Positions 3,798 to 58,690 of a DNA stretch of 64,000 nt are shown one piece after another (within the stretch, counting starts at the first letter, position 1; each line of letters starts with the position of its first letter). The notes under the pieces were generated by a model, which had not been told where the DNA came from, did no database searches, and saw only the letters and a list, made by a program, of their open reading frames with translations. The translations under genes and the position numbers were made by a program. The stretch comes from Octopus sinensis (lineage: Eukaryota), in NCBI RefSeq assembly GCF_006345805.1, contig NC_043008.1, positions 19,654,001 through 19,718,000 of the forward strand, given 5' to 3'.

Positions 3798-3944
3798 ATT
3801 GGGTGGTGGTATTTTTGCTGATACTTTCGTTGGTAAATGGGACTCGTGGACTGTGGCTGTGAAACGGTTAACTCTAGTGATTCACCCAAACCAGTTATCA
3901 TCATCCCTAATTGAATGGATGAAGAAAGAAGTGAATTATTTCAG
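3798..3944 (+). CDS. Protein kinase (TK/TKL-like), first exon in window: Gly-rich loop, VAVK lysine, alphaC Glu
   Basis: Acceptor ttttcag at 3791-3797, donor gtatgt at 3945. Reads LGGGIFADTFVGKWDSWTVAVKRLTLVIHPNQLSSSLIEWMKKEVNYF. Ends in phase 2 (AG), matching the next exon. Confidence 0.93.
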
Positions 3945-16379: not shown

Positions 16380-16863
16380 TAGTCTTCTTCTCTTCTTCCA
16401 ATCAGGACACACGCCATTAGCCACAAAGAATAATCTCTAATTCGAGCCTACTCTAAGCTACTAAGAACGCGTGTGGAAACTTGAAGATCCACTCACTGGC
16501 AGACTGGCAGTTTCACGGCCGCGAAAGCTACGTTGTTATCCTCATTCCGTAAACGGTGGCTTTTAACCGGTGGAGAGATGAACCATCGTGGGGTGCAGAG
16601 GGTTCGCAATCGAGCCTAGGGTCTGAAAGTTTACCACACCATAGTGGGTTACACTATGGTCCCTCTGCTTTGTTGTAGAAGTTGGATGTAAGTGTGAGAG
16701 AAAGTTGTGGTGAAAGAGTATAGTGCCCCCACCCCCCGCCGGAGGCTCGCAGAGCTTAGGTGTTTTTGCTCAATAAACACTCACAATGCCCGGTCTGGGA
16801 ATCGAAATTGCGTTCTTATGACCGCGAGTCCCCTGTCCTAACCACTGCACCATTGCGCCTCCA
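16380..16863 (-). mobile_element. tRNA-derived SINE, head H1 + third tail T3
   Basis: H1 head at ~16690-16863, then an unrelated ~300-bp body ending in gaa/caa repeats. Confidence 0.7.
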
Positions 16864-17535
16864 CGGGTGTTGTTTTATTCGGTGTTAATAATGGCAATGT
16901 TGTTGATGTTTATCGTCGTTCCTGAACTTGCTGCTACTAATTTTGTCCATGTATTTGTCGAGTGGAACTGACTGCGAAAGACATCTTCGCCATGAAAACC
17001 ACCTCCACTCTTCGCTTCTTGGTTTCATGACAAATACAACGCCATATTAATGTTTTTCCAATATTTCGAAAAGAAATATTTACGTTTCGAAATTTCACCC
17101 CTTGGGGTAGATAAAAATAATGTTTGCTAAGAAGCACTATCCAACAAAACAGGAAACGAAACTGATAGACTTATAAGAATGAAAACAACCAAAAGAGTCA
17201 CAGAGTTTTCGTCACACGTTTTGTGTTGGTGATAAACAAGAAGAAAAACAATAATATTCCTTTCTACTATGGGCACAAGGTCTGAAATTTGGGGAGGAGA
17301 TGATTTGATTACCTCGACCCCAATGTTTATCGACCCCAAAATGACAAAAGGCAAAGTCCACCTCAGCCGAATTTGAACCTAGAACGTGAAAATAAACGAA
17401 ATACCGCTAAGAATTTTCCCCGGCGTGCTAAACATAATAACAACAACAACAACAACAACAACAACACTAATTACAACAGCAATAATAATATTAATAATAA
17501 CAACAACACCAATAACAGCAACAGCAACAACAATA

Positions 17536-22859: not shown

Positions 22860-23140
22860 ACCGACCACACCATCACATGTTGTTACACATCGCTTGTCAC
22901 AATGCGTTCGCATTGTTTCAGCCTTCGAATGACGCCACCCCGCTGGCTAAGCAAGCAGGCCAACAGAAGAAAGAGTGAGAGAAAGAGTGGTGAAAGAGTA
23001 CAGCAGGGATCACCACCCCCTGCCTCGTGGAGCGTTTAGGTGTTTTCGCTCAATAAACACTCACAACGCCCGGTCTGGGAATCGAAACCGCGATCCTGCG
23101 ACGGCGAGTCCGCTGCCCTAACCACTAGGCCATTGCGTCT

Positions 23141-23143
<3 letters not shown>
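22853..23143 (-). mobile_element. tRNA-derived SINE, head H1 + tail T2
   Basis: Same H1 head as 43170-42990; different tail ggcctgcttgcttagccagcggggtggcgtcattcgaagg..cacgtgat. Confidence 0.85.
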
Positions 23144-23176
<33 letters not shown>

Positions 23177-23209
23177 ATATATATATATAAATATATATGT
23201 ATATATATG

Positions 23210-23256
<47 letters not shown>

Positions 23257-23261
23257 GTATA

Positions 23262-23293
<32 letters not shown>

Positions 23294-26414: not shown

Positions 26415-27821
26415 ATATATATATATATATATAATATATATATATATACACGCGCACACATATATATATATACGCATATATTTATATAAGTGTGTATGTA
26501 TGTGAGTGTGGGTGTATGTAAATTCCATATGTTTGGGTGTATAATTAAGCACTACAGCACAAACATAGAATTTTGCATGAATAAGAATGAACTTACCCAT
26601 AAATCTCTGTAAATGTTTGACCTTAAGTCTATGTCACACGCACACGCGTGCAAAATACACATACATTCATGCATACATTCATTTATATTTACGCACACAC
26701 ACATAGACACACAAACACACACACACACACAGTACTGAAATATTTAGGGAAACGAAAATATACGTTTGGTTATAAAAACAGGGATATAGAACTAAAATTA
26801 TGAGTATGTAGAATCATTTAGCATCGCTTTCATATTATCATTTTTTCATCTAAAAATTCCTTCTTCATAATTTGAATTGTTATGTTCTACGTCCCCAATG
26901 TTTTGTAGTGTCCCTCTCTACGTCGCCCCTAGTGGGTAATAAAGAAATGAGAGTATGTAGAGTCATTATTTCATCGGCAGAAATTACAAAGGGACACAGT
27001 AGAAAGAGCTTTTTGTGAATTCGGAACTAATCAAACGAAAACCAAAGTTTTCTAGTATCTAGTTATTATAAAAGTTTTACTAAAGTTGATTATTTTTTTT
27101 ACGGTATTGATGTCCATTCAGAGAAGCCTTTTTAGATGCTGATGGAAGAAAAGCAGAAATATTGATACCGAATTACTTTAAAGTCACGCTATAATATCTA
27201 ATACAGTGAACTTAAAACTTAAGACTAGTCGGTTTTAGGGTGTTTAATTGTTAAATATATGTTTCATCTAAATTAGAATTAATATATAATATTGTTTTCT
27301 AACTGGTACTTAATTTATCGAACCCGAAAGGCAAAGTCGATCTCGGCGGAGTTTGAACTCAGAACGTTAAGATAGACGAAATGCCGCTAAGCATTTCGCC
27401 CGGCGTGCTAATATTTCTGCCAGCTCACTCCCTGTAATGTATAATATTCTGAAATATGTTTAGTAATTAGTATATCCCTCCAATAAAACACCTTAAATCG
27501 CTGAGTCTTGGTAGCAACATTAGGCCTCGTCATGTATAGTAATTCATCCGATCAATTATTATGCATTAATATAATCAAGCTCGTATTTTCATCTTGGATG
27601 ATGTCTTAGATATGCCCATGTTTTGAATATGACATCATAATGTCACACTCGATCACGGAATCTCGAAATTTTGAAGCTATATCTATATTTCATCCATACT
27701 ACAACGATATGCTTTTCTTATTGCATTTTTAACGCCAAACATATTCTCGTAATTGTGATTCGTTTGCACTTTACTTCTTCTGTTGGAAACAGTATGCATA
27801 TATATACACATATAAATACAT

Positions 27822-28067
27822 ACTGGTGTTCCACAAGGTACTGTCTTAAGGCCATTACTCTTCATAGTGGTTCTCTCAGATATGCCCTCAATTATTCAGA
27901 TAGCCACCCTGGCTAGCTATGCAGATGACACAAGAATCTCTCAGAAAATACAAGATACTGGAAATATTGCACATATGCAACGAGAGTTGGACGCAATATA
28001 CAGGTGGCCTGAGGGCAACAGCATGCAGTGTAATACAGGAAAATTCTAAGCACTGCGCTACCAGCCT
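27822..28067 (+). mobile_element. CR1/L2-group LINE reverse transcriptase fragment
   Basis: TGVPQGTVLRPLLFIVVLSDMP..LASYADDTRISQKI..MQRELDAIYRW..NSMQCNTGKF*ALRYQ; YADD motif and an in-frame stop. Confidence 0.85.
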
Positions 28068-30541: not shown

Positions 30542-30695
30542 GAAGCACAGACATCGAAACATTGTTAGCGTTTTAGGATTGTGTCTCGAAACCCGTCTTC
30601 CTTGTCTTATGGTCGAATTTGTGGAAGGTGTTGCTCTAAGGGATTACATGAAACATAACTACAATTGTATGACATGGCCTCTTCGAGCACGAATC
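30542..30695 (+). CDS. Protein kinase exon 2 in window (subdomains IV-V, hinge)
   Basis: Acceptor ttttgttccag, donor gtaagt at 30696. First G completes AGG (Arg), then KHRHRNIVSVLGLCLETRLPCLMVEFVEGVALRDYMKHNYNCMTWPLRARI. Ends phase 0. Confidence 0.93.
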
Positions 30696-33481: not shown

Positions 33482-33592
33482 TGTCTCCAGGCATCAGAGG
33501 GCCTGCATTTTTTGCATTCCCGTAAACCAGCAATATTACATAGGGACATCAGATGTGCTAATATATTCATCAGCGATCATGACATCGTTAAG
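33482..33592 (+). CDS. Protein kinase exon 3 in window (catalytic loop HRD)
   Basis: Acceptor gtattttcag, donor gtaaaa at 33593. CLQASEGLHFLHSRKPAILHRDIRCANIFISDHDIVK, phase 0 on both sides. Confidence 0.95.
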
Positions 33593-33897: not shown

Positions 33898-35046
33898 CAT
33901 AGGTTGGACAAAATAATGGAAATACCTAGCATCATAACTTTGAAATATCTATAAAACCATCTAAACCTTGTTTATTTCTATGTATTTTTTATTTATTATT
34001 AGTGTTGCTTAATATGTTTTGCTAAAATTGCTGTTTCTTTTCAGTGTCATCTGGAAAAAGTAATTAAAATTCATTAAAATGACAGATCTATCGGACATTC
34101 AAAGAGGTCAAACTCTCAGTACTCATTTAGCAGGCGCTAGCCTAACGAAAACAGCCAAAATAGTCGGTGTATCATGAAGTACTGTCTCGAAAGTAACGAC
34201 AGCTTTTGAGAAAGAGGGCAAAACATCCTCGTCGAAACAAAACTCCGGAAGAAAACCAATCTTGCGTGAATTGTTATAAAGGATCACAAAAGTACAGTTC
34301 CCAAAATTATTGCAGAGTTTAATGACCACCTCGAGAACTTAGTTCCCACAAAAACTGTTCGCTGGGAGTTGCACAAAGCCGGATTTCAGAATTGGTCCCT
34401 AAAGCAGTGGAAGAATGTTATTTTCTCGGACGAGTCATCCTTTACTTTACTTACGACCACCGGCCGAGTATACGCGTGGAGACAGCCAAAAGAAGCAATT
34501 GACCCAGACTGCCATCTTCCAACTGTTGAACATGGAGGAGATTCTGTGATGAACTGGTCGGGGTCTGTATCAGGGTAATCTGCTGGCTCAATTGTTTCAA
34601 TCCATGGCAGAATTAATAGTGAAGACTAATTAAGCATTTTATCTGATCATATTCATACTATGGTTGCAGAACTGTTTCCGAAGGGAAGCGCAATGTTTCA
34701 GGATGATAATGCACGAATTTACACAGCTACACTTGTTACTGAATGGCACGAGGAACATTCTAGTGAAGATGAACATATTATCTGGCGAACACAGGATCCA
34801 GATCTCAATACTATTGAACGTTTGTGGTGCATTTTAGAAAAAACCATGTAGAGTCGATATCGTCCGCCAACCTTACTGGATACTGTTTTAACTGAAGAGA
34901 GAAAAATTCCTTTGGAAACAATTCAAACTTTGTACGAGCCCATAGCACGTAGAAGTGAAGCTGCTATTACTGCCAAAGGCGGTCCTACCGCTTAAAAAAA
35001 AATACGTGAAACTTTAAGGTGTTTCCATTATTTTGTCCAACCCATG
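33898..35046 (+). mobile_element. Decayed Tc1/mariner DNA transposon with DD36E spacing (Incomer-like)
   Basis: 30-bp TIRs (cataggttggacaaaataatggaaatacct / aggtgtttccattattttgtccaacccatg) with 2 mismatches and TA on both sides. Transposase remnants MTDLSDIQRGQ..., VIFSDESSF, QDDNA...PDLNTIERLW with stops and frameshifts. Confidence 0.92.
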
Positions 35047-42785: not shown

Positions 42786-43170
42786 GGAAGCACTCCGTCG
42801 GTTACGACGATGAGGGTTCCGGTTGATCCGAATCAACGGAACAGTCTGCTCGTGAAATTAACGTGTAAGTGGCTGAGCACTCCACAGACACGTGCACCCT
42901 TAACGTAGTTCTCGGGGATATTCAGCGTGACACAGACAGGGACAAGGCCGGCCCCTTGAAATACAGGTACAACAGAAACAGGAAGTAAGAGTGAGAAAAA
43001 GTTGTGGTGAAAGAGTACAGCAGGGATCACCACCATCCCCTGCCGGAGCGTCGTGAAGCTTTTAGGTGTTTTCGCTCAATAAACACTCACAACGCCCGGT
43101 CTGGGAATCGAAACCGCGATCCTATGACCGCAAGTCCGCTGCCCTAACCACTGGGCCATTGCGCCTCCAC
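42786..43170 (-). mobile_element. tRNA-derived SINE, head H1 + tail T1, full length with 12-bp TSD (possibly the octopus OR2 family, unverified)
   Basis: A-box tggcccagtgg and B-box ggtttcgattccc on the minus strand. TSD agtgcaccaatt at 42774-42785 and 43171-43182; removing SINE plus one TSD restores LINE codons AIVIGALGSII. Confidence 0.92.
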
Positions 43171-45387
43171 AGTGCACCAATTACTATTGCTATCACGTCT
43201 ACTCTCTTCATTGACCACAACCTTTGTATTTCGCACTTTGAATCGTCATAGTTGTTTATTTTTTCTGCTTCGTTCTCATTGATCCTGTTGTCAGTGGGAA
43301 GTGGTGTGTCTATTACCATACATGTTCTTCCTATTTTATTCATCACAACAATGTCAGGTTTCCGATGGTGATCGCACTCGATATATGCATCCCACAGGAT
43401 TTTGCAATTCTCATTCTCGGTGACTCCTGGGGTTTGCCCATACCACGTTATTACTCTTGGTAGGCTCTGATTTCTACAGAATTCCCGATGGGTCATTCTT
43501 GCCACATTGTCATGGCGTCTCTTTATTTGCGTTGTGCTAATTTCGAGCACTCGCTAACGATGTGCAATATCGTTTCCCCCCCCCCCTCTCACCACATATT
43601 CTTCATATTTCGCTGTCGGTAGTGTTGTCTATTCTGCACTTAACATAGCTGGTCCTTAGCACTTGTTCTTGAGATGCGCATATGAGTCCTTCTGTCTCTA
43701 TCTTCAGGTCACTCCTCCTCATCCATAGCCACCGACCCTCTGTATCTCTCTTGGCGTTCACATCCCTTGCGAACTAACCGTATATTTTTTTCTGTCCATG
43801 CTTTTTCTTTTTGGTGTTCATTTTTTGTATAAATTTTTCTTTCATTACACAATATTCAGTTTTGATGACGCCTGTCTTCTTTGAATGTTTCAACAATGGC
43901 GCCGCGACATTTTTTATATACCATGCTAAGCCGTTTTCCTCTGCTTCGATACAGCCCTGGCAACTGATCAAAGCTCCCACCCTTTCTTCTAGACAAGTAC
44001 AGCCTCTGGGTGTCATTCTTCATTTCTCTTCATTTCTCTCTTTTGCTATTTTATAATTCCCCTCCATACCGAGATGATGATATCGTCCACGTATTAAATG
44101 CTTGGATTTTATTCCACGCAGTCAATACTGAGTGCAATACCAACCTTAGTCTTCGAAAATACGCCACCCTCAGTTGCTCTTTCATTTCAATTTCTATTAT
44201 CTCGTTGAACGCTACTACGACAAGGTATTTGTATTTTTCCGATTCAATTTGCTTAATCTAGTCTCTATTCAGTACCTTGCCTACTTTTAGGTAGATTATT
44301 CCGCACTGCTTGAGTCCAAATTCCATTCCAATATCAGTACTAAAACAGTGTATGTGTTCACCAATGATCTCACTTGTGTGTCATCCTTACCATATAGTTT
44401 CAAATATCCATGAAGATGAGGTGGTTCATTGTTCGAGATTTTCCCCTTTAGATGCTACACCAGTTTCATTTCCCTAAGTACCAAAGGCAGGGGCATCCTG
44501 CTGAAAACAACGAGGAGAAGCTATCACCCTGAAAAATCCCTCTTCTGATATCCAGGGTGCCCAAGCTTTTTCCGTAAGATGTCAGTTCAATTTTCCACCC
44601 CACCATACTTCTCGTCAGGAAACAAGTTTCATTCCTCGCAATTCCAAACTAATCTAAGCACTCAATGATCAACGAATATGGAATCGTATAAGCTCTGCGA
44701 TAGTCAATCCAGGCCATTCGAAATGTATTCTCCTTTGTTCACAGTCTTGCATTACCATTTTGTTCATCAATAATTGGTTCTGAGGTGCCTCTGCATCTCC
44801 TTCTACAACCTTTTGGTTCCGTCGGTTATATATCGTTTTCACCAAGAAATTTGTACAGTTCTTCTGCAATTCCTCCTGACAGTACCTTCCACATTAATGG
44901 GAGGCAAGAAATTGGACCGTAATTGTCACAGTCATTTCCCTTTGATACATGTCATATACAACACTGATCGTATTTTTGTCATCCACTCGGGATTTCTTCT
45001 TCCATTGATCAATGCATTAATTTGATCGATCAATTTATCGCAACTACTGAACTTTCATTATCCAAAATCCCAGTGCACCATCAGGTCCTGCTGCTTTCTA
45101 ATTGCTTATCTCTTTATTCATATATCTGATACTATCTTTTGAGAAATGATCAGCCTCTTGCTGGGGATAAGAAGCTGTTTCCTTCAGTCTGTAGAGCCAT
45201 TCAGCTGTAGTATTATGCTGTTCTTGCTTACTGTATATCCTACCTCATAAAAGTCGACTTTCATCAGCATCAGAGACTAATCTTTCACGTTGTTTATCAT
45301 CATTAATCGCTCGATAAAATCTTTTTTGTTCGTTTCTAAACAATATGTTTCGCCGGTATTGCTTAATCTGTTGTCCAAACCTAGTTA

Positions 45388-48166: not shown

Positions 48167-48170
<4 letters not shown>
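47857..48170 (-). mobile_element. 5'-truncated Dong/R4-like LINE 3' end inside a (TAA)n/(CAA)n array
   Basis: Minus strand IGAMGMIAKGADRYLTQIPGNPKMAEIQKIVLMGTAHILRKILSM* (stop 48032-48034), then a 3' UTR and (AAT)n tail. Triplet repeats on both sides. Confidence 0.85.
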
Positions 48171-48212
<42 letters not shown>

Positions 48213-48309
48213 GTTGTTGTTATTATTATCATTATTATTATTGTTGTTGTTGTTATTATTAGCATTATTATTATTGTTGTTGTTGTTGTTATTGTTGTTG
48301 TTGTTGTTG

Positions 48310-48367
<58 letters not shown>

Positions 48368-48402: not shown

Positions 48403-48472
48403 GTTGCAGATTTTGGAATAACCAAACTCCTACAGCCTTTGAGGGAAGAGTGCAACAAAGAGGATTGTGCGT
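48403..48472 (+). CDS. Protein kinase exon 4 in window (DFG and activation loop)
   Basis: AG at 48401-48402, donor gtaagt at 48473. VADFGITKLLQPLREECNKEDCA plus 1 nt (T). Phase 0 start and phase 1 end fit both neighbouring exons. Confidence 0.9.
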
Positions 48473-49278
48473 GTAAGTAATGCTAATGTTTACCTAAATC
48501 AGTGACGATGGAAGTTTTTGTCGTAACATGCAGATGTTCGCGGGTACTTTTTACTGACGAGGCTCAAATAGACAGAAACGCGCAATTAGGCAGGCTTTCG
48601 CCTATGTTACTGATAAACCTTTGTGCTGTTCGACACTCTACGTCTATAAGAGATAATATCTCAGAACTAATACTAGAGTTAACGTGCTTCCGTTAATGTA
48701 TCTGCATTTAGTATAGTAAACAGATTACTCTTTTGCAGTAATATTTCGTTTGTTGCACAGATCAAACGAATATGCACACACATACATCTACAGAGAGAGA
48801 GAGAGAGAGAAAAAAGAGAGAGGGTGAGAGAGAGAGGGAGAGAGAGAGAAAGAGAGGGATAAAGAAAGAGTGGAAAACTCATTGATGACTGTGTAGGTCA
48901 AGGCAAAACTGTGTGTGGAAAAGTGGCAATTGACCCAGCAATTGCACGAAATAAATGTTTAACCAAAGTAATGACCATCAAGGAGCGATGCACCTCTGAA
49001 GCTCTGATGTTGCAGATGTTTCTGTCTGGGAATACAGAGCCAAACTGATAAAGTAATGTTCCTCACTATCTTTTCTGTACACTCGGCAAGGCACAACCTT
49101 GGGTTGGCAATATATTGTCGACCCCGAGACGACGGATGTGTTGAATTCATCAGAATTTGACTCCAGCAAGTAGAACCAAAAACCACGAGCATTGTATTCT
49201 GCACCCTCATTACTCTGCCAATTCGCCCTCTACATGCACATACACACACACACACACACACACTAATAACCACATTCT

Positions 49279-49325
<47 letters not shown>

Positions 49326-49375
49326 CTGTAAGTACGTGTACAAACATCTATATATAAATATATATTAACGCTCAC

Positions 49376-49415
<40 letters not shown>

Positions 49416-49556
49416 ATACGCATATCAATGTATGTATGTTTATGTGTATGTGTGTGTATGTGTGTGTGTGTGTCTACGATTGTATGTTTTTGTAAATTTC
49501 TATTTGCCGTATACATGTAACGATATTTCCTTTCTTTTGTTCGTGTTTTCTTAAAG

Positions 49557-49744
49557 GTCAAAAGCATCTCAGCGCATGCGCTCCTTCTATACGGTGGACC
49601 GCGCCAGAGGTTCTTCGCAATCCAAGAGCCAGAGAGGAAGACCGCTGTTTTTCCACAGCCTCTGATGTTTATTCATTTGGTGTGTTTATGTGGGAGATAT
49701 TATATAACAAAGATCCTTTCTACGAAATAGACAACGAAGAAAAG
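49557..49744 (+). CDS. Protein kinase exon 5 in window (P+1 loop, APE, alphaF)
   Basis: Acceptor tcgtgttttcttaaag, donor gtatgt at 49745. GT completes TGT (Cys), then QKHLSACAPSIRWTAPEVLRNPRAREEDRCFSTASDVYSFGVFMWEILYNKDPFYEIDNEEK. Confidence 0.95.
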
Positions 49745-51160
49745 GTATGTTGGTTTTTAATCATCTTTATTTGAAGACTATCTCAAGGAAAAACATTAGA
49801 AAAAGATTCTGTCACAATATTTGAAAAGACATGGGAAGAAGATGAACGGGTGGCTTCAATAAAAGGAATCGTAAGGAAAGCTCATACACACACGATTAAA
49901 TCAATACTATATGGTATAGATGATATTTTCCATTCCCTCAAGTGAGACAGTCGCTTCATTTGTTTTTGATTATTTCAGGAATTCTACATCGAAAAACTTG
50001 CAATGTCCAATTTAGCGCAAGATGATTGATCTGAAATAAATTTGGTATTTTTCGCATGTAAGCACGTCACTGAAGTACTTGATAGATTTTCTTGTTTATC
50101 TGTTGGCATTGAAGCATTTTTCAAACTGCTACTGTTTTCAGTTTCCGATATATAATATAACGATAAGAAAAGTTGACAGCAGAAAACGTATAGCATTGGT
50201 GAAGGTTTAGTTTTATACATAAAATGACAAATATGATGCTAAGTATTGCCAGTTCGATCACACACCACATTAGATAGGATAAGGTGTCGATGCAAATGAA
50301 GTGAAGCTGCAAAAAAGAATTCATCATTCTACTTAGATACCTGTATTTATCTCTAGTTCGAATTTTTCTTAAATTCGTTGACCCCACAGCGAAAATATAG
50401 CCACGTGTGGCGATAATGATTATCCCGTTGCAGAATTTACATTGATTATGGAGACAGGGTATTTGGCGGGCGATTTCTCTATTGCTTGGTGATTAACGTG
50501 CGTTCATAAAGAATGAAAGGTGATATACGGTTCTCAAACGCTTGTAATATCAGATATACAATAAATTCTTTTGACACCAGGGTTTATAATATGTAAACAT
50601 ATTAATCAAAACAGCTCATTCGAATCCGAATATCTATATAGATATGCAGTTTATATTTCCCTGAATTACACACGTATGACCTTCGAAGTTCCTTTATTGC
50701 GAAGAAGGAACTTCGGAATCGCCTTTATGGTAAACACACCAGGCTTCTCGCAAGAATCATTATATCTCATTGATTTAATGTAAAACATAAGTGATTTGAG
50801 GAAAAATTCCATCCAGTCCATCTATTTTTATAGGGTAAGCACTGCTCATCACTGCTACAGTGCTGATAAAAAGACCATATCAGAAGTTATATTTTGGCGG
50901 ATTTCCACAAAGTATTGGCAGACACACACAGCATGGAATTAAGCATCTACCAAAGCTAATAGGATATTGGTGGCGTTTTATCTTGGAACGCATCGCAACG
51001 CAACTGATAAAGATATTTATTCTAAATACGCGTCTGACAAATATATATATATAAGATAAGCACACAATAATTAATAAATGAGTATGATAATTAGTTTCTT
51101 GTAACCTTCCCTTATAGAGGTCTCCCATTTTTCATATTACGCCCCAATAAATAATTAAAT

Positions 51161-53590: not shown

Positions 53591-54358
53591 ATTATTCCAT
53601 GCTTTCCGCTAAAAATTCAGATATGGTGTCTGTGAAAGGTAACTAGACTTAACAGACTGCAAAATGTGGCTAGATTCGACAGACAGGGCATTGCACATCT
53701 AAGGCATGTTACCGATGCGTAAAGTACAAATTAAAATATGTTATAATTAAACTCATGCTAGATTGTTCGTAACATATGCGACTCCCTCACGGGTATGGTT
53801 GGGGGACACTTGGGAAGAGAAGAATTGCTCATGATATCTCTGTTATTTTCATGGAACAATGATCGTAGATATTTTAATTAGCTGCGAGGAAAAATACTGC
53901 AATCATAACATCCGGATTAGTTTAGCTAAAATGGCGTTCAATTAAACAGATTCGGAAATATGTTAAGACATGAGACATGTTAAGTTGCCTGAAAATGATG
54001 GAAATGATGAAGATGATGATGATGATGATGTTTGTGATAATGATGACGATTATGATGAGGATGATGATTTTGATGATGATGATGGAGATTGTCATGGTTG
54101 TGATCGTTAGGACGATCATTTGGACGACTACGACGATGACGGGAACAATCATCGTCACGCGCATGATCGTGGCGGTGGTGGCGGTGAAGTTTATGTTGAT
54201 GACAGCAACATTACTGATGATGGTAGTTATGATGAAGTCGATGATGATTATGATGATGATGATGATGAAGATGAAGATGATGATGATGATGAGGAGGATG
54301 CGTGGAGCATAATGATGATGATGAATGCGATGGAGTTTATGATGATAATCCTGGTGTC

Positions 54359-55942: not shown

Positions 55943-58030
55943 CATTATTTATGTTATATATATATATATATATATACTAGCAGTATCGCCCGGCGTTGCT
56001 CGGGTTGTAAGGGAAATAACTATATAAGCATTTTTAGAGAGTTATAGCCAAAAAATAGCAAAGAAAATGCATTAAAAATTGAAATAAAATTAAGGTAATT
56101 TTTTTTTAAATCGTTGACACATCGTAGATATTTTTAGAGAGTTGCTTCCCTTATATAAAAGCGAAAAAAATGCATTAAAATGGAAAAATATGATGGTAAA
56201 TTTTTTTTAAATCGTAGACTCATCGTAGACGCGCGCTAATACCCAGAAGAGCTCGATATGAATCACGACTATAAGATACCCGCTTTTGGTTAAACTGCAC
56301 CGCAAAATGTGGGAGTAATTACGAATGTAAATCGAAGGGGACAGACACACAACTTCACTCTTATATAAAGATGCTTTTTTTTTCAGTCATAGAGTTAGAT
56401 TTATGAAGGTCTTCAGTAGAAAATCCTTCGAATTCTGACTCGCTGCTTGATATAATGAAATTCGTATCCATTTTTTGTCAGAATTACAAATTTTGAAAAC
56501 ACAATAGGAACAAATTTCGGAAAAAAATCTCCCATAATTCACGGAATTAAAATTACACTTCGACTTTTTTACAAAACTGTATTTGAAGTGTTTACGAAGT
56601 ATAATACGTGTTTTCACGAATGTACTAAAGAGATTTACTCTGATATTCTCATTTAAATATGAATAGGTAAATTCGGGCGGTTTGGTAATGAAAGGGTTTA
56701 TATAAGTGTCGTCTGTTTATACATAAACACTGTTTCATAGTTTCAGTTTAGTCTTCTTCAAATCACTGTCGCTAATTTACTCTCTTCCAAGAACATTTTC
56801 ACTCACTGTTATCTGTTAGCTTCCCATACATTTTACTCATGTATCTATCAGCGTGATAGACAGAAACAAATATTACATTTACTTTCATTTTATTCGTTGC
56901 CCACTGTGTGTGTGCGTTTGCGTGTGGTGTAAACCAGACTAAGAAAAGCATTTGACACACACACCAGAATGCGAGTTTTCTGTAAATTTTGCTTAATTGG
57001 AGTTTAAATTTTAAAAACTGGACCTGGCATGACGCGATGCATTGTACTCTTAAAACTGCTAGGTAAATTGTAATTGAAGAAATCCTATATTGTAGATTTG
57101 TATAACTCCCAAAGGGAGGCAGATAAAATCTGCCTTTTATAATAAGAGATATGTGTTGTGTGTTTGTGTGTATCAATATTTATGTGTATATATGTATATA
57201 TTTCCAATTTGTGATTGTGTATCCCCCCAAAATTTGCCCTCTGGTGCTTTACGTCACTCTTAATCGATTATTCCATGCTTTCTCCTAAACATCCAGATAT
57301 GGTGTCTGTGAAAGGTAACAAGATTTAACAGACTGCAAAATGTGGGTAGCTTCGACAGACAGGACATTGAACATCTAAGGCATGTTACCGATGCGTAAAG
57401 TACAAATTAAAATATGTTATAATTAAACTCATGCTAGATTGTTCGTAACATATGCGACTCGCTCACGGGTATGGTTGGGGGACACTTGAGAAGAGAAGAA
57501 TTGCTCATGATATCTCTGTTATTTTCATGGAACAATGATCGTAGATATTTTAATTAGCTGCGAGGAAAAATACTGTAATCATAACATCCGGATTAGCTTA
57601 GCTAAAATGGCGAACAATTAAGCAGATTCGGAAATATGTTGAGACATGAGACATGTTAAGTTGCCTGAAAATGATGGAAATGATGGAATTGATGAAAATG
57701 ATGATGATGATGATGTTTGTGATAATGTTGACGATTATGATGAGGATGATGATGTTGATTATGATGATGGAGATTGTGATGGTTGTGATTGTTAGGACTA
57801 TCATTTGGACGACTACGACGATGACGGGGATAATCATCATCGCGCGCATGATCGTGGTGTTGGTGGTGGTGGCGGTGGCGGTGGTGGTGGTGAAGATTAT
57901 GATGATGACAGCAACGTTACTGATGATGGTAGTTATGATGAAGTCGGTGATGATGATGATGATGATGAGTGTGCGTGGAGCATAATGATGATGATGAATG
58001 CAATGGAGGTTATGAGGATAATGCTGGTGT

Positions 58031-58067
<37 letters not shown>

Positions 58068-58098
58068 AGTAATAACTACGACAAAGACGATAGCAACG
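53591..58098 (+). repeat. Direct local duplication: 53591-54461 and 57267-58098
   Basis: About 400 bp of complex sequence (attattccatgcttt..cctgaaaatgatggaaat) plus a cryptic (GAT)n region align between the two copies. Confidence 0.95.
55976..56372 (+). mobile_element. Non-autonomous Helentron/Helitron-like element
   Basis: 5' actagcagtatcgcccggcgttgctcggg with a small hairpin, ~100-bp internal tandem duplication, 3' acagacacacaacttcactcttatataaagat; follows a (TA)n tract. Confidence 0.65.
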
Positions 58099-58132
58099 CG
58101 AAAATACGGCAGATAAAAAGTATAGACTGAAA

Positions 58133-58690
58133 GTGAGGACAGGCTCGAGAGAAGTGTCCACATTGTTGCCCGTTGGTCAGTCCGTGATCCTACAGAATAT
58201 AAAACCAGTTATGATCGAGTTGGGCAATATATTTAGTAGAGCGTACGCTGTCACTGTTATTTCCCGCGCCATAAGAACTGGTATGAACACAATCTACAGT
58301 CAGTCACTGAGGGAGACAGTGTTACCGCACTATGGGATTATGGGATACATACAAGCAGGCAAATAAATACTAACACGTTAGACATCGTCATCATAACCGT
58401 AAGACAAAATAACATGCCTGTTAATGGATATGACATTGCCTACTGATACAAACAACTCAGCAAAAGAATTTGAAAACTGTCGATATACCACGGTTTTGAG
58501 ATTGAGGTTATTAGGATGTGGCAATTAACCAACAAATCCATGTCTATTGCTGTGGGTGTCCTCGGAATGTTCATGAAAGTTAATCAACTTACGAGGTTCA
58601 AAAGATTGTGCTGACATCACCCGCTCACCATCTCAGGAAGTTTCTCTCCATCTGATGTATACATGCTTTACATTTCTGGTGGAGTCCTGC
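58133..58690 (+). mobile_element. Degenerate REL-endonuclease LINE 3' fragment
   Basis: Frameshifted TALWDYGIHTSRQINTNTLDIVII..TCLLMDMTLPTDTNNSAKEFE..IEVIRMWQL..IAVGVLGM, followed by a (TAA)n tract at ~58770-58912. Confidence 0.7.

Follow-up and report, generated by a model that had tools for sequence, protein, structure and literature searches.

A 64,000-nt stretch of the Octopus sinensis genome (assembly GCF_006345805.1, contig NC_043008.1, positions 19,654,001 to 19,718,000 of the forward strand) carries five exons of a protein kinase gene with an unusual activation loop. The whole stretch is called the window below, and all positions are counted from its first letter. The gene encodes a conserved spiralian receptor kinase composed of an MRH-like ectodomain, one transmembrane (TM) helix, a juxtamembrane segment and a kinase domain resembling RAF and other TKL (tyrosine kinase-like) enzymes. 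The loop between DFG and APE is extended and contains a cluster of four cysteines, designated C1 to C4. The first three are invariant in all family members with an intact loop, the fourth in the molluscs. Judged from the alignments, the best reading overall is a thiol-based centre, either a Zn-thiolate or a disulfide.

Kinase exons and the exon 4/5 junction

Motif scans and tblastn with the kinase domains of BRAF and SRC revealed five coding pieces in the window, all on the + strand. Exon 1 (3798-3944) encodes the Gly-rich loop LGGGIFA, the β3 Lys (VAVKRL) and the αC Glu (MKKEV) and corresponds to residues 277-326 of XP_029643365.1. Exon 2 (30542-30695; KHRHRNIV...PLRARI) comprises β4-β5, the hinge and αD. 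Exon 3 (33482-33592) specifies αE and the catalytic loop with HRDIRCAN at 33539-33562; the Cys of this motif (33554-33556) is located three residues past the catalytic Asp. Exon 4 (48403-48472) encodes VADFG-ITKLLQPLREECNKEDCA, with DFG at 48409-48417 and the codons for C1 and C2 at 48451-53 and 48466-68, and ends with the T at 48472, the first base of the C3 codon. Exon 5 (49557-49744) starts with the remaining GT of this codon (49557-58) and continues with QKHLSACAPSIRWTAPE...SDVYSFGVFMWE...IDNEEK. It contains a His codon at 49565-67, the C4 codon at 49577-79 and APE at 49601-49609. The four introns of 26,597, 2,786, 14,810 and 1,084 nt are all bordered by GT..AG.

Joined, exons 1 to 5 yield a stop-free frame of 223 aa from LGGGIFADTFVGKW through IDNEEK. 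In Pfam, these 223 aa match PF07714 (PK_Tyr_Ser-Thr; 1.8e-41) and PF00069 (1.5e-31), and the full-length Octopus protein matches PF07714 with 4.2e-51. The product encoded in the window is the catalytic domain of a eukaryotic protein kinase (ePK). Its catalytic set is complete (LGGGIFA, VAVK, MKKEV, HRDIRCAN, DFG and APE), as in a typical RD kinase. Neither the C-terminal kinase exons (VLISILKNVRPG...CWNQDPQKRPKF) nor the N-terminal exons for ectodomain and TM helix were found within the 64 kb by tblastn and motif scan. Their location outside the window is to be expected from introns of 15-27 kb. An open reading frame (ORF) following the AG at 49978 (EFYIEKLAMSNLAQDD and a stop codon) was considered as the next exon and rejected, as it has no homology to any relative. 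The setting of the gene on the + strand is characterized by large introns, a GC content of about 33% and many microsatellites.

The activation segment (48409-49609, + strand) spans the last of these introns. It reads DFG-ITKLLQPLREECNKEDCACQKHLSACAPSIRWT-APE and has 33 residues between the two motifs, among them four Cys, one His and no Tyr. The loop is thus built as a preliminary description of this region had reported it for 48403-49600, an interval running from the start of exon 4 through the Thr codon before APE, including the third Cys with its split codon. This codon is interrupted by a microsatellite-rich phase-1 intron of 1084 nt (48473-49556; GTAAGT...AAAG), which leaves T on one side and GT on the other.

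Several lines of evidence support this junction, for which the split codon had already been cited as support. Reading through the donor site gives TGT AAG TAA with a stop codon, so the intron has to be spliced out. With 100% identity, the spliced product matches residues 277-502 of XP_029643365.1 from O. sinensis ("probable serine/threonine-protein kinase drkC", 579 aa) and of CAI9730957.1 from O. vulgaris, and the public model XP_029643365.1 has the identical exon 4/5 junction. In the orthologue from Pinctada imbricata, an intron is present at the matching codon and in the same phase (GAG TGC TGC T/gtaagt...ag/GT CAG GGA). Three short contigs, assembled from the public sequencing runs SRR27666082, SRR24189498 and SRR8281676, carry uninterrupted frames of 1.8-1.9 kb from cephalopod relatives, whose products share 55-57% identity with the Octopus protein. 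These contigs span the splice site without a break (TGC GTG TGT CAG AAA GCA TAT AGC GCA TGC) and, being intron-free, are cDNA-like. Moreover, the joined exon 4/5 sequence has homologues in 38 relatives. A wrong junction, with a cysteine cluster created by the fusion of unrelated sequence, would be in line with the errors found at other exons in several public gene models of the family. Against the canonical GT..AG borders, the read-through stop, the matching Pinctada intron, the contiguous cDNA-like contigs and the homologous loop in 38 proteins, such an artefact is close to excluded.

Conservation of the cysteine loop

Relatives were gathered by an exhaustive representative search and an alignment-seeded search, which together provided 38 proteins with 30 distinct loops. 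Longer queries were required, since the 86 aa of exons 4-5 by themselves yielded a single fragment in a word-indexed search. The loop set comprises cephalopods (three Octopus species, Argonauta and two further relatives), gastropods (Lottia, Pomacea, Babylonia, Aplysia, Plakobranchus, Physella and Biomphalaria), bivalves (Solemya, Pinctada, Tegillarca, four scallops, Mactra, Dreissena and two unionids), annelids (Owenia, Paralvinella and Helobdella) and the bdelloid rotifer Didymodactylos.

The consensus of the loop is DFG-L-x-K-L-x-Q-P-L-R-x-x-C-x3-[DE]-C-x-C-Q-x3-S-A-C-P-x-S-I-R-W-T-A-P-E. None of the 30 distinct intact loops, whether from molluscs, annelids or the rotifer, lacks C1, C2 or C3. 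Two gene models without the full triad either skip an exon or are mis-joined exactly at the split codon. The spacer between C1 and C2 has four residues in 26 loops and five in the other 4, and that between C2 and C3 is always a single residue. In alignment A3, C185, C190 and C192 form invariant columns, and the adjoining positions vary freely. C4 is found in 24 of 24 distinct mollusc loops and replaced by Leu or Phe in annelids and the rotifer. The motif S-A-C occurs in 24 of the 30 loops, all of them molluscan, and a CCC run in 14. The further Cys in the catalytic loop (HRDxRC) is shared by all molluscs and by two of the three named annelids. Conservation of the cysteines across orthologues, suggested earlier as a check, was thus found for C1 to C3 throughout and for C4 in the molluscs.

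The other residues highlighted in the preliminary description fared differently. The His three residues after C3 occurs in only 7 of the 30 distinct loops (Octopus, scallops and Paralvinella); its position is occupied by Ser in Argonauta and by Ala in the remaining cephalopod sequences. The motif of the family is therefore C-x4/5-C-x-C(-x6-C) and not C-x4-C-x-C-x2-H-x3-C. The absence of Tyr is a feature of the octopods (Octopus and Argonauta) and does not extend to the family, as 10 of the 30 loops have a Tyr three residues before C4.

A control set of 184 activation loops was taken from 117 other kinases retrieved in the same searches. Their median length is 20. No Cys is present in 111 of them, one in 62 and two in 11, and none contains three or more. 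The loop peptide has no match among the PDB sequences at E ≤ 10. The cysteine cluster of the Octopus loop is more than chance. The view that the loop might be an Octopus-specific oddity or low-complexity noise was dropped, since no other part of the family signature is as highly conserved as the loop, in which the triad is the most conserved feature. As deduced from the aligned sequences, this signature is an activation segment about nine residues longer than usual with Q-x-x-R-x-x-C-x(4,5)-C-x-C, followed in molluscs by x3-S-A-C-P. Invariance of the cysteines in the orthologues provides strong evidence for a function of their thiols.

Some relatives are likely pseudokinases. Thr or Ser replaces the β3 Lys (VAV[TS]R) in the pteriomorph bivalves Pinctada, Tegillarca and scallops (P0002, P0030, P0179-P0183), and HRN is found in place of HRD in the rotifer Didymodactylos and a metagenomic relative (P0110, P0154). 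The C-x4-C-x-C triad is retained in these proteins. That it persists where catalytic residues have been lost points to a task in structure or sensing and not in catalysis.

Position and predicted structure of the loop

Both in single-sequence and in profile alignments, C1 falls on the Tyr that regulates EGFR and JAK (LREEC versus EEKEY in EGFR and DKEYY in JAK), and the extra residues, about nine by comparison with BRAF or EGFR, follow directly after it. The loops of EGFR and JAK have the start DFG-[LI]-[TA]-K-L-L in common with the octopus family, for which AlphaFold2 predicts a helix at this place. In contrast to EGFR and JAK, the regulatory Tyr (KEY, KEYY) is replaced by an invariant Cys and a nine-residue Cys-rich insert. 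The preliminary description had used as a frame the Src-type loop of about 23 residues with a regulatory Tyr. This frame does not apply to the Octopus loop with its 33 residues, no Tyr and a Cys at the position of the EGFR/JAK Tyr.

An AlphaFold2 model of the kinase domain, calculated from a 16-sequence alignment, has a mean predicted local distance difference test (pLDDT) score of 83.5 and a predicted template modelling (pTM) score of 0.85. It contains a helix at residues 174-183 (ITKLLQPLRE) immediately after DFG, followed by coil through the Cys region. A helix directly after DFG is characteristic of the inactive state of Src/EGFR-type kinases. The solved folds closest to the model are those of inactive RIPK2, BTK/ITK and BRAF. 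The kinase domain is located C-terminal to a clear TM helix and is cytosolic. Invariant cytosolic Cys clusters usually bind metal rather than being permanently disulfide-bonded.

Family identity and architecture

All family members share a Cys-containing ectodomain of about 200 aa, one strongly hydrophobic TM helix, a juxtamembrane stretch, the kinase domain and a short basic tail, and the full-length orthologues carry a signal peptide. The ectodomain lies within residues 1-246 in XP_029643365.1 and within residues 1-229 in the Argonauta orthologue P0184. In Pfam, the full protein matches the kinase domain only; no ectodomain match and no SH2 or SH3 domain were found. AlphaFold2 modelled the ectodomain of the Argonauta orthologue from a 12-sequence alignment with a core pLDDT of 88-96. 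When this model was submitted to Foldseek, the top 10 hits were all domains of CI-MPR/IGF2R (E 4.6e-6 to 1.7e-3, probability 1.0). According to this model, the ectodomain has an MRH-type fold, i.e. one resembling the mannose 6-phosphate receptor. The similarity to MRH/CIMR domain proteins concerns the ectodomain fold; the difference is its fusion to a kinase and the lack of a Pfam match. Sugar binding by MRH domains involves Gln, Arg, Glu and Tyr residues; alignment A4 of the ectodomain contains one invariant Glu and one near-invariant Arg. In molluscs, a juxtamembrane motif, RDYEP-x6-8-KK-x2-PVL-[DE]-x2-I, is conserved in front of the kinase domain (alignment A2, columns ~680-720). The Tyr in this motif is a candidate for regulation or docking.

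With the kinase profile of the family, the best PDB match is BRAF (168 bits, E 1e-48), followed by CTR1 and RAF1; a JAK kinase domain reaches 161 bits. The nearest database matches outside the family are plant and protist TKL kinases with about 30% identity. The motifs HRDIRCAN and SIRWTAPE closely resemble HRDLRAAN and PIKWTAPE of tyrosine kinases, and the overall similarity favours TKL. The kinase is classified as a receptor-like TKL from this sequence and profile similarity, and its placement near RAF within TKL is provisional. Consequently, the earlier framing as a Src-type enzyme has to be replaced: BRAF, CTR1 and RAF1 are the best profile matches, and this receptor crosses the membrane once, has an MRH-like ectodomain and lacks SH3 and SH2 domains.

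With the RAF/CTR1-type TKLs (BRAF, RAF1, plant CTR1 and the Dictyostelium DRK kinases), the family shares the RD kinase fold in addition to the best profile matches. However, the identity is only 25-30%, and an MRH-like ectodomain and a TM helix are present, whereas RAF has RBD and C1 domains. Furthermore, the loop is nine residues longer than that of RAF, with three to four invariant Cys at the location of the RAF phospho-Thr/Ser, and HRDxRCxN as well as the P+1 sequence S-I-R-W-T-A-P-E look tyrosine-kinase-like.

The automatic names of the relatives are inconsistent and include drkC, drkD, Ror, FGFR-like, ephrin-receptor-like, RAF-like, SIS8 and sty17. The label drkC is an automatic NCBI name derived from the Dictyostelium DRK receptor-like kinases. 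A literature search found no paper on the family and no description of a receptor kinase with an MRH ectodomain. A paper on the oyster kinome mentions only four TKLs in 'unique families', without detail. The combination of an MRH ectodomain with a TKL kinase appears to define an undescribed receptor-kinase family of Spiralia.

Five public gene models of the family (P0188, P0030, P0035, P0026 and P0175) contain errors. Model P0188 from O. bimaculoides skips the HRD exon, P0035 skips the DFG-side loop exon, and the Tegillarca model P0030 loses the split Cys codon at the junction. The O. sinensis model has an aberrant N-terminus and the O. vulgaris model an aberrant C-terminus after ...EEKVLIS.

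Possible functions of the loop cysteines

The cysteine triad, in molluscs together with C4, is tentatively read as a thiolate centre, most likely chelating one Zn2+, although the chance that this assignment is correct is put below even. A Zn2+ knot would tie the extra residues together and fix the conformation of the loop. It would start exactly at the position of the regulatory Tyr of EGFR and JAK and, therefore, would assume the job of phosphorylation there. Because of its thiolate ligands, the centre would be labile to oxidants, which would cause metal release and subsequent disulfide formation, and this lability would provide a built-in redox or metal sensitivity. The helix that AlphaFold2 predicts for the invariant LxKLxQPLR after DFG suggests that the knot might control the choice between this helix and an extended, substrate-competent loop, i.e. 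toggle the loop between both forms. The catalytic-loop Cys could be a fifth partner for the loop cysteines. Zn-thiolate modules are known from the redox switch of Hsp33 (CxC...CxxC), the rubredoxin domain of PknG from M. tuberculosis and the C1 domains of RAF and PKC. With them, the family has in common a cytosolic Cys cluster that could hold Zn2+ and release it upon oxidation, and in PknG, RAF and PKC such modules regulate a kinase. The difference is that these are separate domains with canonical CxxC pairs, whereas the C-x4/5-C-x-C of the octopus family lies within the loop and has three universal candidate ligands. A broader proposal, that the ancient family of spiralian MRH receptor kinases swapped activation-loop phosphorylation for a metal-thiolate knot (Zn or Cu) in the loop, is likewise less probable than not.

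A number of observations weigh against a Zn2+ centre. Only three ligands are universal; annelids and the rotifer have Leu or Phe at the fourth position and would need a ligand from another source, e.g. the catalytic-loop Cys, Asp, His or water. C-x4-C-x-C is a non-canonical spacing for a zinc knuckle. The His suggested as a ligand in the preliminary description lacks conservation and was rejected as such on this ground (7 of 30 loops). In the AlphaFold2 model, the Cys region has a pLDDT of 65-67, which means moderate confidence only. Thiols in a vicinal, CxC or CCC arrangement are just as typically found in disulfide switches, at Cu(I) sites and where proteins are S-acylated. Finally, no published metal site within the activation loop of an ePK turned up in a literature search.

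A metal-free alternative is a redox switch in which reversible intramolecular disulfides, either between C4 or the catalytic-loop Cys and a member of the triad or between C2 and C3, lock the loop in an on or off state under H2O2; BRSK1/2, AKT and Aurora A are examples of such control. There are precedents for activation segments governed by thiols in general: Aurora A (C290) and PKA (C199) have a 'T-loop +2' Cys two residues past the activating Ser/Thr and seven before the Ala of APE, and such a Cys is present in about 11.5% of ePKs (10.1101/571844). The mollusc S-A-C resembles their T/S-x-C and, counted from APE, lies within one residue of this register. In BRSK1/2, redox control involves a disulfide between the T-loop Cys and the Cys of CPE as well as a Cys pair near HRD (PMC11964447), and the catalytic-loop Cys of the octopus family, invariant in molluscs, is similarly located. 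LRRK2, itself a TKL, has a redox-active CC motif in its activation loop (PMC10991482), and CCC occurs in 14 of the 30 octopus-family loops. On the other hand, the loops of those kinases are of normal length and use a single Cys or a pair, whereas three to four are clustered here in a dedicated insert, and a two-Cys switch would leave unexplained why three cysteines have remained invariant and at fixed spacing for more than 500 million years. In some lineages with the triad, C4 and the catalytic-loop Cys are absent. In strict register, the mollusc C4 is at -8 from the Ala of APE, i.e. at T-loop +1 and not +2, and kinases with a T-loop +2 Cys are mostly AGC or CAMK and not TKL. Altogether, a disulfide switch without metal is considered fairly unlikely. 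The same holds, to a slightly greater extent, for the view that the cysteines have no special chemistry and are packing or contact residues of a docking or autoinhibitory element specific to the family, involved in dimerization, substrate docking or binding of a partner. The invariant neighbours Q and R and the helix LxKLxQPLR indicate that the whole segment is constrained, and the segment is retained in pseudokinase-like members. However, Cys is rarely invariant for packing alone, and the Ser, Ala or Val then expected at C1 to C3 was found in none of 30 loops from three phyla.

Two other modifications of the thiols are still less probable. S-acylation (palmitoylation) of the CxC or CCC could tether the activation loop to the inner leaflet and thereby control how accessible the active site is. 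The receptor crosses the membrane once and has an extra Cys at the cytosolic end of the TM helix (GGLCY), and the CCC run of 14 loops has a likeness to known acylation clusters. This mode of control is nevertheless improbable, as no precedent within an ePK activation loop was found, the loop is about 190 residues away from the membrane anchor, and fixed spacing together with a distant C1 is atypical of acylation sites. Alternatively, the thiolates might bind Cu(I) or an Fe-S cluster and turn the receptor kinase into a metal or oxygen sensor. CxC is typical of Cu(I)-thiolate sites. Copper-dependent kinases exist, e.g. MEK1 and ULK1/2 (PMC9599708). In the loop, neither sequence similarity to a known Cu or Fe-S site nor a second CxC was found, and with its purely pattern-based footing a Cu(I) or Fe-S centre is very improbable. 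The preferred reading of the triad remains the thiolate centre with Zn2+.

Repeats and transposon remnants in the window

An (ATT)n/(GTT)n microsatellite of about 200 nt (48170-48366) ends about 35 nt upstream of the exon 4 acceptor, and (AG)n, (AC)n, (AT)n and (GT)n tracts (48790-48850 and 49240-49470) fill much of the 1.08-kb intron that splits the C3 codon. Giant intron sequence contains a Tc1/mariner-like transposase fragment (HTH_Tnp_Tc3_2, 0.0068; DDE_3, 1.7e-4) and a reverse-transcriptase fragment (RVT_1, 1.9e-6). These transposon remnants are located at 34270-34848 and 27816-28046, both on the + strand, and all three matches are below the Pfam gathering scores. A dispersed repeat is present on the + strand in at least four copies (~1308-1556, 16698-16885, 22951-23291 and 42995-43248) with near-identical pseudo-ORFs (KEYSRDHH); it is probably a SINE-like element (short interspersed element). 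Two similar segments about 3.7 kb apart (53758-54312 and 57434-58161) have the ORFs MFHENNRDIMSNSS (- strand) and MRHVKLPENDGND (+ strand) in common. Behind each copy follow long stretches of low complexity with many Asp, Met and Ile codons.

Significance

The textbook switch of a kinase is phosphorylation of its activation loop. Oxidation of a single loop Cys is a second layer of control that has been recognized only recently. The cysteine cluster of the Octopus kinase extends this theme of thiol-controlled activation segments and is itself undescribed in the literature found: three to four cysteines have been kept for more than 500 million years at the site of the regulatory Tyr of EGFR and JAK. 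Should they bind metal or form disulfides, the cluster would be a novel design for a kinase switch and could serve as a natural template when kinases gated by redox state or by metal are engineered. If the knot exists, this would be the first ePK whose activation segment is a metal- or redox-sensing module, and receptor signalling would be gated directly by cytosolic metal or oxidant levels. The combination of a lectin-like MRH ectodomain with a TKL kinase in molluscs, annelids and rotifers merits a proper family definition.

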